Shown here: positions 20,010 to 23,626 of the stretch, piece after piece
Numbering within the stretch: the stretch's first letter is position 1
Layout of the letters: each line of letters starts with the position of its first letter
Origin: Magallana gigas
Lineage: Eukaryota
Assembly (NCBI RefSeq): GCF_963853765.1
Contig: NC_088861.1
Location: forward strand, 14,260,001 to 14,324,000
Direction of reading: 5' to 3'
Length of the DNA stretch: 64,000 nt
The notes under the pieces: model-generated
Told to the model about the DNA's origin: nothing
The model's database searches: none
What the model saw: only the letters and a program-made list of their open reading frames with translations
Made by a program: the position numbers and the translations under genes

Positions 20010-22821
20010 ATGACGGCACAAAACAGAATGTGTGTGTGTGTTCTCATTTTTACTGGTCGAGTCTTGTTGTCAGTTGGACTATCATCACAAACACCAGAAA
20101 GGTAGTTCATTGAGTTCATTTAGCTATACTGGCTTTTTCTGACAATCATTTCTTCTGTAACAGTTGTATTACATACAATATATTTTTTAATCTCATATTT
20201 CTTTTGTCTTTTTCGGAATGTCAATTAGTTTTCAACACTCTGAATTTACAGTATTGAAGATTACACCATTGGAATACAGTGCAAGACTTGGGATGCTTCT
20301 TTCAGTAAATGCAAAGGTCAGGGGAGAAATCTTACTTGCAATTTGAAACTGCTTTGTTAATTGTTCTGTTTTAGTTTTTTGTCAGCTTTGACACATGTAT
20401 AAAAATATTGTTCGTTTGTTTTCTTTACATCAAACATACAATAAATCTCCAGCTTCGTTTAATTAATTTAAATTTAGAAATTTTTAAATTTGATCATTTC
20501 CTTTTCTCAGAGTGTCATAGTGGATTTTTTGGATTAAATTGCATACCATGTCGCTACCCTAGCTATGGAAGGGACTGTCAAAAAGAGTGTAACTGTAATG
20601 AAACTTTCTGCAACCCACCGACTGGATGTGAAGGTATGTTTAAACAATTTTAATGGTTCACAAAATAAGTTATTCTTTAAACACTTATATATCTGAAAAC
20701 AAAATTTTTACATTCAGATGGATCACCTACATTACAACCGAAATCGACCTCAGCTGTCATTGCGCAGATCTCTGTTACTCGGATAATGACTTTGAAAACA
20801 AGTAAATATCATATTGTTGAATGGTTATGGAATATCTTAATATCTTATATCTTTATACTTTAACATCTTAAAATGTAGCTGCAGCGTGTTCTGTCGGTTT
20901 CTTTGGAATTAGCTGCGATAAACCGTGTCGATATCCATCATTTGGATTCCATTGCCAGTCAGAGTGTAGTTGCAGTGAGGAAAATTGCAACCACGTAGTA
21001 GGTTGTAACGGTAAGTTAGTGTTTTCTTTAGCTGTGTGTAATTTTTAATATATGTTGTGTTTGATTTTATTCTTATATGTATTGAAACGACAGCATGTGT
21101 TCAAAAAAATTGTTATGCAATTCAATGTAAAATCATTCTTTGTCGAAATAAAATTAATGCATTTTAAACAGAAAAATAATAATCTACATCTTTATCTTTA
21201 TCAACAAATAAAAAAATAAAACATTTTTATAACATCACATTATTTTTCATTTAATCGTCATCTGACGCATAGCTGTATATATTGCGACTCAGTTTTGGGA
21301 TCAAATAGGCGTTGGCATTATAATGAAAATAAAAACAATCTGTTTATGGCGCGGTTAAACATAGACATATATATCACGATTATTTGATCACAAGGAATTT
21401 ATGTTATTCCAAAACAGTTATACAATTGTGTTATATTAATAAATTTGACTTTTTATTTGTACATTTCTAGACATCTTGTCCTGGTCTCACATATTGTTGC
21501 ATGTTACAAAAGAGAATGTCACAATGACAGGGAAAAAATTAGCATTACATCATATCATAGTTATTTTTTCTGCTAATTTATTATCATTAAGGAAGGAGTC
21601 TTTTCTGGTTTTCGACTTGTCAAACGTAAATTTGATTAATTGTTCATAAAATCAAGATGAACGGAAATTAAAATAGTATATTTTTCTTTCTTTTTTACTA
21701 TCATACAACTTGGCATAGAAAAATGTAATCAATGTTTAGAATGGAACAAGGACTATATTTTTGGCGTAATATTGGCGTAGGAAAATATCACATGTTGCGC
21801 AATTCAGAATTGCTGAAGATTATATATATAATGAGTCTGTTTTAGCATTTTAAAAACAATAACAATAATGTCGGATTCTTTTTTTTACTAATGTGAACTA
21901 ATAATATGATACTTGGGTTTCAGAATATGTTTTTAAAATATGATTTGCCTATCAAATAACATTTTTATAAGCTTTTTAAAGCGCCCATTCTATACATTGA
22001 TTTTTGTGAAAAAATCACTAAAATCAGTTTTTCTCTCTTATGAAATGGTCAATATATTAGCTTTTCTGTCAATTTATATCTTTATATAAAGTCTTCATAA
22101 TACATGAAAATTATAAATATTTTATTATTGGAAGCATAAAAAAATAATCAACATTTCTTCAAAATTTAAGAAAATTAGAGGAAATGCGGGCTAAGCAATA
22201 TCAATTTTAGTATAAATATTTATTCCAATTTAGTAGTATAAGCTGATAGACACTCTCATGGTCTATGATTTCATTGAAGATTTGAATCTTCAAATCTTAA
22301 ACAAATGTCTACATAACTATAAAGAGCTACACTTATTTTTATCATTCTTTACGTTGAGGAAAAAGGTAGTGACCTTGACCTGACCTTTATCCGAAAACAA
22401 AAAGGTCAAATTTAGCTAAACTGAGAGAATCATTAAGTAATATGATCCGTTTGACTGTGTCAAAATTTCATGTTTTTTATTATTATAAGAAGTATGTTTG
22501 ATAATGAAAAGACTCCTTCCTTAAGTGGATTTTTTTAAACAAATCTTATTTTAGAAAAAAAAAAGATTCATATTATCGCGCGATCAGATGCAAATATTTG
22601 CATTAGATCAAAGGTTTGTGCACATCACTTGATTATTCATGCAGTTTACTATTATTATATATTAGGTCAGTGTCTTAGTAACGTTAAAACCATTTATTTT
22701 AGAGTCATCTACATTTTGTAACTCCGAAGAAGGTCACAAATTACTAGTACACAATACTTGTGCAGTCTCTCCCTCCATGCCAAGGTGTATTCGTTGGTCG
22801 GATGGAGAGCTGCAAGAGTAA
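20010..22821 (+). CDS. Compact two-EGF gene A1, predicted secreted (TM-less), ~202 aa
   Basis: Exons 20010-20101 (MTAQNRMCVCVLIFTGRVLLSVGLSSQTPE), 20252-20316, 20511-20633 (EGF1), 20718-20801 (linker), 20885-21010 (EGF2) and 22703-22821 (ESSTFCNSEEGHKLLVHNTCAVSPSMPRCIRWSDGELQE*). All GT-AG and in frame. No hydrophobic segment after the signal peptide. Confidence 0.8.
21591..22520. mobile_element. 930-bp Kolobok-type non-autonomous element in the last intron of A1
   Basis: Perfect 15-bp TIR ggaaggagtcttttc with TTAA duplicated on both sides. The paralogous site at 59364-59367 has a single TTAA and no insert. Confidence 0.9.
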
Positions 22822-23626
22822 TCTTTATTTGCTCGTTTGCGGTTTGGAAATTTAAAAAAAAACAAATCAACAGAAAACACATTTTAATAGATAAAAAAAT
22901 ACTGTTTGAGTATTTTCTTTAAGTTGTATCAAAATTGCTAAATACATTTTCCAATCCTTTGCTGAAATGGTAAAACAAGGCAAATTTAAAATCTTGGTGT
23001 ATGTATTTTCAAACATTAAGAGTACATATAAATTATTTTGTGGGACATGTTTGCGTGGATTTTATTTCATTTTCATGCTTATAAAAACAAAACGTCCATA
23101 AACGCTAAACATGGAAAAAAAACTTGGAATGGTGGTAAAGAAATCAAAGAGTTTATATCACTGTGTTACAGTGCCTCGTAATGAGAAGTGTTCAGCTTTA
23201 AATAATGGAATTTATCCCTACATATGTGGACATGTATTATTGATTAATAAGATGAATTTGTTATTCTTGTGTATTGTGTTTATCATTTTTTTTTAAATTA
23301 AAGGTTGGCTTTAAATAAAAGATCAATTTATTTCTCTCCTCTTAGTTACCAAAGATAATTTATAATAAAGATAAAACAAAATACGTTATAGATTGCTGAT
23401 TAAAACAGATATTGATAAAACTTTATTGAAAAGCAAAATTACAAGTCGGTCACGTTACTTAAACGGACCGTGGTTTGGATAAAAACACGACGTCATTATT
23501 AATTTCTTTTTAAAAAGGAAACAGCAATTTTGGTAAAATCACTGATGTGTCGTTTTCAATTTATGCGTGTTTTTACGAACGATCAAGTACTTTTTAGTTA
23601 GAAAATTTCTTGGCCAAATGTTAAAG

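Follow-up and report, generated by a model that had tools for sequence, protein, structure and literature searches.

The window analysed here, 64,000 nucleotides of Magallana gigas contig NC_088861.1 (positions 14,260,001 to 14,324,000 of the forward strand), holds a tandem array of a small gene with epidermal growth factor (EGF)-like repeats, and two of its copies, A1 and A2, carry a chimeric last exon. In both, the part of the exon that codes for the transmembrane (TM) helix is gone, and the reading frame continues into DNA that lies downstream of the gene in other copies. As judged from these paralogues, the A1/A2 state arose by deletion and not by insertion. Our preferred explanation, to which we give a probability of roughly 0.55, is that a complex deletion left a 39-codon open frame as a by-product that is hardly used, and that A transcripts enter intron 5 or read through into the neighbouring B gene. 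The open frame itself is most likely accidental and little or never used. Coordinates are those of the window; the exons, intron 5, spacer segments, junction 1 and MITE (miniature inverted-repeat transposable element) copies of A1, B1 and A3 are given on its + strand.

Structure and origin of the chimeric exon

The original prediction held that the last exon of A1 and A2 opens like the TM exon and then switches to sequence found farther downstream in A3, an A-type copy that has kept its TM exon. Alignment confirms this with exact coordinates. The open frame spans 22703-22821 (59561-59679 in A2) and comprises 39 codons followed by TAA (22819-22821). At its start lies the TM exon remnant (ESSTFCNSEEGHK.., 22703-22747), which is homologous to 39305-39349 in A3, 25151-25195 in B1 and 49100-49144 in B3; with the end of intron 5 included, 22530-22747 aligns to A3 39134-39349, a match that reaches 45 nt into the TM exon. 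The sequence from 22737 to 22832 then aligns to A3 41022-41115, and also to 26883-26995 (B1), 28263-28372 (B1b) and 50593-50708 (B3). Both alignments share the junction 1 overlap CAAATTAC at 22737-22744 (59595 in A2), which matches GAATTAC at 39340 on the proximal side of A3 and CAAATTAC at 41022 on its distal side; the proximal breakpoint of A3 reads cacGAATTACa (39337-39347). Behind junction 1 follows retained single-copy spacer DNA (22748-22783) that elsewhere is found ~1.7 kb past the TM exon. An internal splice acceptor, ..gtgcag/TC, lies within it and has 22766 as the first exon base (59624 in A2). The frame ends in the ~68-bp 5' arm of a MITE (22784-22851; 59642-59709 in A2), which supplies the 12 final codons (CIRWSDGELQE) as well as the stop. 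At junction 2 (22851/22852) this truncated MITE, broken in its small internal palindrome (consensus GGAGATCTCC), is joined to the promoter-proximal region of the B gene. A1 22851-23206 aligns to 46134-46508 upstream of B3, and the predicted second junction to the B promoter region thus stands. What remains of the A1-B1 spacer, together with the region upstream of B1, occupies 22852-23626.

The undeleted reference state is seen in A3 (39305-41115), where a TM exon (39305-39465) is followed by AATAAA at 39468 and by a MITE that starts at 41067; the stretch from ~39350 to 41021 is missing in A1 and A2. A3, B1, B2 and B3 all have the TM segment and also the 1.7 kb of spacer, as does A4, a fourth A-type copy just past the window end. 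Farther downstream, 43503-44223 is ancestral spacer, common to the regions downstream of A4 and B3 and absent in A1. Because this segment is missing in A1, and because a MITE would not integrate as a stump of 68 bp, junction 2 is a true deletion as well. From the stop to the ATG of the B gene, the spacer measures 0.8 kb between A1 and B1 (22821 to 23627) versus 7.9 kb between A3 and B3 (39465 to 47353). Both predicted sizes hold, but 2.4 kb of the longer spacer (41115-43500) is a later transposable element (TE) insertion private to A3, and the ~270-bp repeat at 44244-44533 is later, too.

Other origins of this arrangement were considered and rejected. Insertion of a TE into the exon does not account for the tail, since junction 1 and the MITE are separated by 37 nt of single-copy DNA, and A3, A4 and the B copies have this DNA beside the same MITE. 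Mere inflation of the A3-B3 spacer by insertions conflicts with the truncated MITE of A1 and A2 and with the ancestral segment 43503-44223. Hypermutation of the retained 105 bp was dismissed because identity to any paralogue is only ~72-79% throughout the 3' part of A1.

The deletion had been predicted to be driven by microhomology. In microhomology-mediated deletion, a short identity present at both breakpoints beforehand remains once in the product, with no filler. With A3 as a proxy, the overlap at junction 1 amounts to 6 nt (AATTAC) to 8 nt (CAAATTAC), but with B1 or B3 it shrinks to 2-3 nt, and in either case it is judged from diverged paralogues (~78-80% identical) and not from the true ancestor. 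At junction 2, the overlap is 2 nt or fewer. Deletion polarity stands, and microhomology at junction 1 is plausible, not provable, from such alignments. The two junctions are only ~105 bp apart, which suggests one complex repair or template-switch event over two independent deletions. We propose that A1 and A2 derive from one A-type gene of the tandem A-B array of M. gigas, in which a deletion with two junctions removed most of the last exon, namely the two thirds coding for the TM helix, along with the stop, its AATAAA and ~1.7 kb of spacer. Also taken were the 3' 100 bp of the MITE and what else of the A-B spacer is now missing. Junction 1 at a short identity and junction 2 in the MITE palindrome would fit end-joining or template-switching repair.

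The orthologous locus of Crassostrea angulata (GCA_025612915.2) has the same two junctions. As they are shared by A1, A2 and C. angulata, the comparison shows that the deletion predates both the A1B1/A2B2 duplication and the divergence of the two oyster genomes. Divergence between A1 and A2 is 2.3% in non-coding DNA.

Properties of the 39-codon tail

Of the 39 codons, 13 stem from the old TM exon, 14 from the spacer and 12 from the MITE, which also supplies the stop. The A1 tail reads ESSTFCNSEEGHKLLVHNTCAVSPSMPRCIRWSDGELQE up to its stop; A2 differs from it by S>F and R>C, and C. angulata has an open tail as well (ESSTFCYSEEGHKLLVHNTCAVSPSMPRCICWSDGELQE, then a stop). The tail was predicted to be hydrophilic, to lack a TM helix and to carry extra Cys. 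Kyte-Doolittle analysis of the spliced models agrees, with a 19-residue maximum of 0.37-0.74 in A1 and A2 vs 2.1-2.3 in A3, B1 and B3, and the extra Cys number two in A1 and three in A2. Formerly non-coding DNA does lie in frame, as the idea of a recruited C-terminus implied; functional use of the tail, the other half of that idea, found no such backing in the RNA and protein evidence described below. When A1, A2 and C. angulata are compared, three nonsynonymous substitutions and no synonymous one fall in the tail, with gain or loss of Cys among them. In A3 and B3, an AATAAA follows the stop at a distance of 3 nt; the deletion took this motif as well, and A1 has no AATAAA or ATTAAA within 476 nt after the tail stop. 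Across junction 2, A1 reads ATTTAAA (22849-22855), an ATTAAA spoiled by one extra T.

New with respect to the original prediction is that a third of the tail and its stop are MITE sequence, and that the family already makes TM-less isoforms by way of intron 5.

The chimeric exon in RNA and in protein models

RNA evidence came from three transcriptome contig sets of three studies (X1, X2 and X6) and from one raw polyA run (X21). Of the latter, ~1% of the reads was sampled; the sample matched only TE and no A or B exon, and is uninformative. In the contig sets, transcripts from the A promoter are found at a low level (depth ~5-8 over the A exons) and are correctly spliced through exons 1-5 in at least two studies. 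GT..AG joints in the contigs include 20099>20250, 20314>20509, 20631>20716 and 20801>20879 for A1/A2, and 23900>24069, 24194>24280, 24365>24445 and 24575>25150 for B1. The bin 22660-22843 with the chimeric exon has depth 0 in all four runs, of which X1, X2 and X6 do cover A exons 1-5, the B exons and the B TM exon with its joint 24575>25150.

No short protein with the tail was found in a collection of 5.8 billion proteins, in a length-limited search that is silent on full-length proteins. Public models of the A gene were reached through a search of representative proteins, with the EGF2 exon as the seed. None of these models uses the acceptor at 22703, and none contains the 39-aa tail. In the older model UPI0005C35160 (183 aa), exon 5 is joined to the internal acceptor at 22766, which gives an 18-aa tail ending in VSPSMPRCIRWSDGELQE; this splice could be reproduced here, and later RefSeq models dropped this type of 3' end. 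XP_019928597.1 (149 aa) is a truncation with a frame-shifted exon 5. For annotators, the locus holds a warning, with three to four mutually incompatible public protein models for one gene.

Probable alternative fates of A transcripts

A first route for A transcripts would lead past exon 5 into intron 5 (21011-22702) and yield a soluble protein of 177 aa with two EGF-like repeats that ends in GKLVFSLAVCNF. Read-in adds GKLVFSLAVCNF and a stop; this peptide is identical after exon 5 of A1 and A2, and AATAAA follows at 21147, 21207, 21215, 21328 and 21438. Contigs of X1 and X2 lie over the exon 5 donor or intron 5, at 20981-21184, at 21194-21473 and at 21255-21591 joined to 22530-22606, the last being a form without the 938-bp TE of A1 intron 5. 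Contigs of the B gene also cross their exon 5 donor (24547-24695 in X6, 24550-24838 in X2). In the newest M. gigas RefSeq, XP_065927605.1 (221 aa), a model of the A3/A4 gene (window 38408-38600), is TM-less and ends in GKLVFSLAVCNF and a stop by intron read-in after the last EGF exon. From this annotated ending and the B contigs past the exon 5 donor it follows that a TM-less isoform made by intron read-through is a habit of the family and not an innovation of A1 and A2.

A second route would be read-through of the shortened spacer, with A exon 5 spliced to the EGF2 and TM exons of the B gene to give a membrane protein with three EGF-like repeats. The predicted C. angulata protein XP_052711736.1 (262 aa, 'MEGF10 isoform X2') corresponds residue for residue to A exons 1-5, B exon 5 and the B TM exon, and isoform X1 of the same gene is B alone. 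Joining A exon 5 to B exon 5 is a phase-1 to phase-1 splice that stays in frame in both A1-B1 and A2-B2, with 262 aa each. A joint 20801>24445, from A exon 4 to B exon 5, was set aside, as it has 20 nt on one side and the same 20 nt occur in B3. In its strongest form, this route implies that the double deletion made A and B one conjoined transcription unit, in which the A promoter serves both the soluble two-EGF protein, made via intron 5 or via the chimeric exon with its MITE stop, and the three-EGF membrane protein. We regard this as possible but tentative. If true, the unit would reproduce at the RNA level the three-EGF architecture that A3/A4 gained by intragenic exon duplication, and would represent a dated snapshot of ongoing exon shuffling in a fast-evolving, putatively immune-type cluster.

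Weighing the explanations

Several observations weigh against an accidental, hardly used tail and against transcripts that end in intron 5 or in B. None of the three haplotypes (A1, A2 and C. angulata) interrupts the tail frame, and its acceptor, which is ancestral and has a good pyrimidine tract, is intact in each of them. In A2 (59708) and in C. angulata, an ATTAAA straddling junction 2 lies 29 nt after the tail stop. UPI0005C35160, with its end VSPSMPRCIRWSDGELQE, does take the recruited DNA as C-terminus. Contig sets may miss rare transcripts, and a hole in their coverage proves nothing; moreover, X6 is confirmed RNA and X1 and X2 are presumed to be RNA by guess, though they contain GT..AG joints. 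As to read-through, one X1 contig carries a junction from EGF2 to B EGF2 with the ACC codon of XP_052711736.1, but its 5' side lies on B exon 5 and is not assignable to A. Finally, the 615-nt coding sequence (CDS) has no stop or frameshift in the three haplotypes, versus 16 frameshifting indels per 5.9 kb of flanking non-coding DNA. Under neutrality, the probability of finding no frameshifting indel in the CDS is ~0.19, so that its intactness is mildly unlikely. This argues mildly for some function of the gene, not of the tail.

The open frame, the intact acceptor, the ATTAAA and UPI0005C35160, together with a signal peptide kept in the absence of a TM helix and a mild synonymous excess in exons 1-5 (eight nonsynonymous and six synonymous substitutions among A1, A2 and C. 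angulata), would be expected if the chimeric exon were a real terminal exon and A1 and A2 encoded a new secreted protein of 204 aa (183 aa via 22766), with spacer and MITE sequence recruited as its C-terminus and acting as a soluble decoy or ligand version of the membrane paralogues. We consider such a protein quite improbable. An open frame is not unusual by chance, with a probability of ~0.12 for an open 26-codon extension at local base composition, and all three substitutions within the tail changed an amino acid. The zero depth of the exon in three transcriptome assemblies, the missing polyadenylation motifs behind the A1 stop, the failure to find short tail-bearing proteins and the retreat of later RefSeq models from this 3' end point in the same direction. 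Among the possible fates of A transcripts, such a secreted product with its recruited C-terminus has the weakest support.

Alternatively, A1 and A2 might be young pseudogenes, put out of action by the deletion, whose residual transcription is noise, and the fusion and truncated models artefacts of automatic annotation. The low RNA depth over the A exons and the mutual inconsistency of three public models of one gene would agree with this, as would the transposon inserted in A1 intron 5. So would the rates of change, since A1 and A2 differ by 1.8% in the CDS and by 1.7% in the intron, and their dN/dS of 0.47 (seven nonsynonymous and four synonymous substitutions, too few to inform) is not significantly below 1. 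We nevertheless hold decay of this kind to be unlikely. Besides the uninterrupted 615 nt, all ten splice sites are intact and exons 1-5 are properly spliced in at least two studies. Furthermore, the B copies that kept their TM exon evolve equally loosely, with Cys>Phe replacements, so that the whole cluster shares this relaxed evolution. Evidence that the A gene is alive is thus mixed and weak.

Layout of the gene cluster

Self-comparison of the window revealed a tandem array of one small gene in two types, A and B. The copies lie at 19.6-22.8 kb (A1), 23.2-25.3 kb (B1), 36.2-39.5 kb (A3), 47.0-49.3 kb (B3), 57.4-59.7 kb (A2) and 60.1-62.2 kb (B2). A1B1 and A2B2 form one segmental duplication (18981-27147 vs 56766-64000; 97% identical). 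A4 is found at window coordinates 66303-70779 (C9:14326303-14330779) and is 97.6% identical to A3. Its MITE is uninterrupted, and no B gene follows it; from the latter, the larger duplicated block seems to be of the form A-B ... A3-type.

Gene models were built from RNA splice joints and homology, and six intact models could be assembled. They measure 204 aa (A1, A2), 217 aa (B1, B2) and 219 aa (B3), and 218 aa for A3, or 262 aa with its duplicated EGF2 exon. The N-terminal half of the family plan begins with a signal peptide; a short segment containing Cys leads on to an EGF-like repeat with eight Cys and to a Ser/Thr-rich linker. In the C-terminal half, a second EGF-like repeat is followed by a last exon, which codes for the TM helix, the juxtamembrane piece before it and the 13-aa cytoplasmic tail after it (HSSSAIYFNISYS). 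Exons 1-5 of A1 are at 20010-20101 (signal peptide), 20252-20316, 20511-20633 (EGF1), 20718-20801 (linker) and 20879-21010 (EGF2), and their A2 equivalents at 57793-57884, 58029-58093, 58288-58410, 58495-58578 and 58656-58787. The AG and GT sites of these exons are intact in both copies, as originally predicted. In B1, exon 5 (EGF2, 24445-24576) and exon 6 (TM, 25151-25311) are defined by the joints 24365>24445 and 24575>25150; the B2 equivalents are 61303-61434 and 62010-62170. We also considered A3 as a hard-wired A-B fusion. This was rejected, since its third EGF exon is closest to the exon 5 region of A3 itself (88%), which points to an intragenic tandem duplication.

B1 exon 3 (24071-24196) carries C61F in EGF1, and exon 5 of the C. 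angulata B gene (locus coordinates 13496-13627) carries C146F in EGF2; both genes are otherwise intact. Such Cys>Phe changes in TM-bearing copies show that these, too, are loosely constrained. The region downstream of B1, including the MITE, is present as a tandem duplication (26518-27321 and 27900-28698, 95%) just before an ISL2EU-type transposon (29373-35398).

The MITE and other repeats

The segment 22784-22851 has at least 40 matches of 83-89% identity, scattered over all ten chromosomes in both orientations. All-against-all comparison and alignment of 12 flanked copies set the borders of an element of ~170 bp (up to ~260 bp in one copy), the ends of which, GGGGTGTATTCG...CGAATACACCCC, are inverted repeats; one copy has long inverted arms. 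No consistent target duplication was readable from the 12 flanks. One mark of a MITE is a short, non-coding sequence with many dispersed copies and shared ends, and the element shows these features; terminal inverted repeats with a target-site duplication are the other mark. A full-length copy lies downstream of B1 (26927-27088), and others at 28305-28477, 50640-50806 and 63780-63953. The MITE is of full length after B1, B1b, B2, B3 and A4, cut after ~68 bp in A1 and A2, and interrupted at 41115 by the 2.4-kb TE in A3.

That 2.4-kb repeat (41115-43500) is rich in CTTTAAGCCACCTTTAAG-type tandem units and inserted exactly into the MITE downstream of A3. It has two further local copies, at 15334-17707 (inverted) and, in window coordinates past the end, at 73817-76200, and the three are 95-96% identical. 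The ~270-bp dispersed repeat of the A3-B3 spacer (44244-44533) has at least 40 copies in the genome (78-83% identical), in places as local tandem clusters on C8 and C7. In intron 5 of A1, the 938-bp TE (21587-22524) is non-autonomous, flanked by a duplicated TTAA target and bounded by inverted ends of 19 bp (TTAAGGAAGGAGTCTTTTC...); A2 (59363-59368) and C. angulata both have an unoccupied site. The element looks piggyBac-like, and its family is very abundant in all four runs, including the raw polyA reads, with very high multi-copy depth and loose ends at its two borders.

Comparison with known systems

RefSeq names the proteins of this family MEGF10/11-like, Draper-like or CED-1-like (XP_052711734.1, XP_052710337.1, XP_034330968.1 and others). 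Over exons 1-5, A1 and A2 are 70-97% identical to these oyster genes and share with them the eight-Cys repeat CxxGxxGxxCxxxCxxxxxGxxCxxxCxCxxxxCxxxxGC, the phase-1 exon plan and the type of TM exon; unlike them, they have lost the TM part of the last exon. MEGF10, Draper and CED-1 themselves carry an EMI domain at the N-terminus, then EGF-like repeats (~15 or more), a single TM helix and a cytoplasmic tail with NPxY and YxxL/ITAM motifs. In contrast, the oyster group has two to three repeats only and a 13-aa stub without NPxY or YxxL, and no EMI was detected. The group thus departs from these receptors in EMI and repeat number and in the signalling tail. A search for EMI, EGF and other Pfam families in the single exons and in four full public models gave none at E<=1, and the only PDB matches were weak ones to Tie2 EGF repeats (E 0.04). 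The label 'EGF-like' accordingly rests on the Cys pattern and these Tie2 matches. On the sequence evidence, the engulfment-receptor names reflect repeat similarity only. They hint at roles in recognition or immunity, but the genes lack the features that define that receptor family. We found no usable literature on the gene ID or on the family in oysters. In bivalve genomes, small surface proteins with EGF repeats form very large families that evolve fast.

The locus is an ordinary, if well-resolved, case of gene-family decay and rewiring, with no evidence of a new kind of protein or mechanism. Its value lies in being dated and resolved to the base: a two-breakpoint deletion, with one break in a MITE, remodelled the cluster by loss of a membrane anchor and a terminator, and its likely consequences at the transcript level are intronic termination and read-through fusion with the neighbouring gene. 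The exonisation of TEs is a related case, in that the last 12 codons and TAA of the A1/A2 frame lie in the terminal arm of a MITE. Here, however, the MITE was brought into frame by a deletion and not inserted in the gene, and the exon is putative.

Conjoined genes are marked by transcripts that begin at the promoter of the upstream gene and continue, by an in-frame splice, into exons of its downstream neighbour. A and B resemble them in an upstream gene without terminator, a spacer of 0.8 kb and an in-frame splice annotated as an isoform of the B gene. The difference is that read-through, here an annotated route, would follow from a dated DNA deletion. Soluble receptor isoforms made by intron retention or intronic polyadenylation offer the other parallel. 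XP_065927605.1 of A3/A4 is of this kind, and A1 and A2 encode the same peptide and have RNA over the intron. For A1 and A2, unlike such receptors, this isoform would be the sole self-contained product, their own TM exon having been destroyed.

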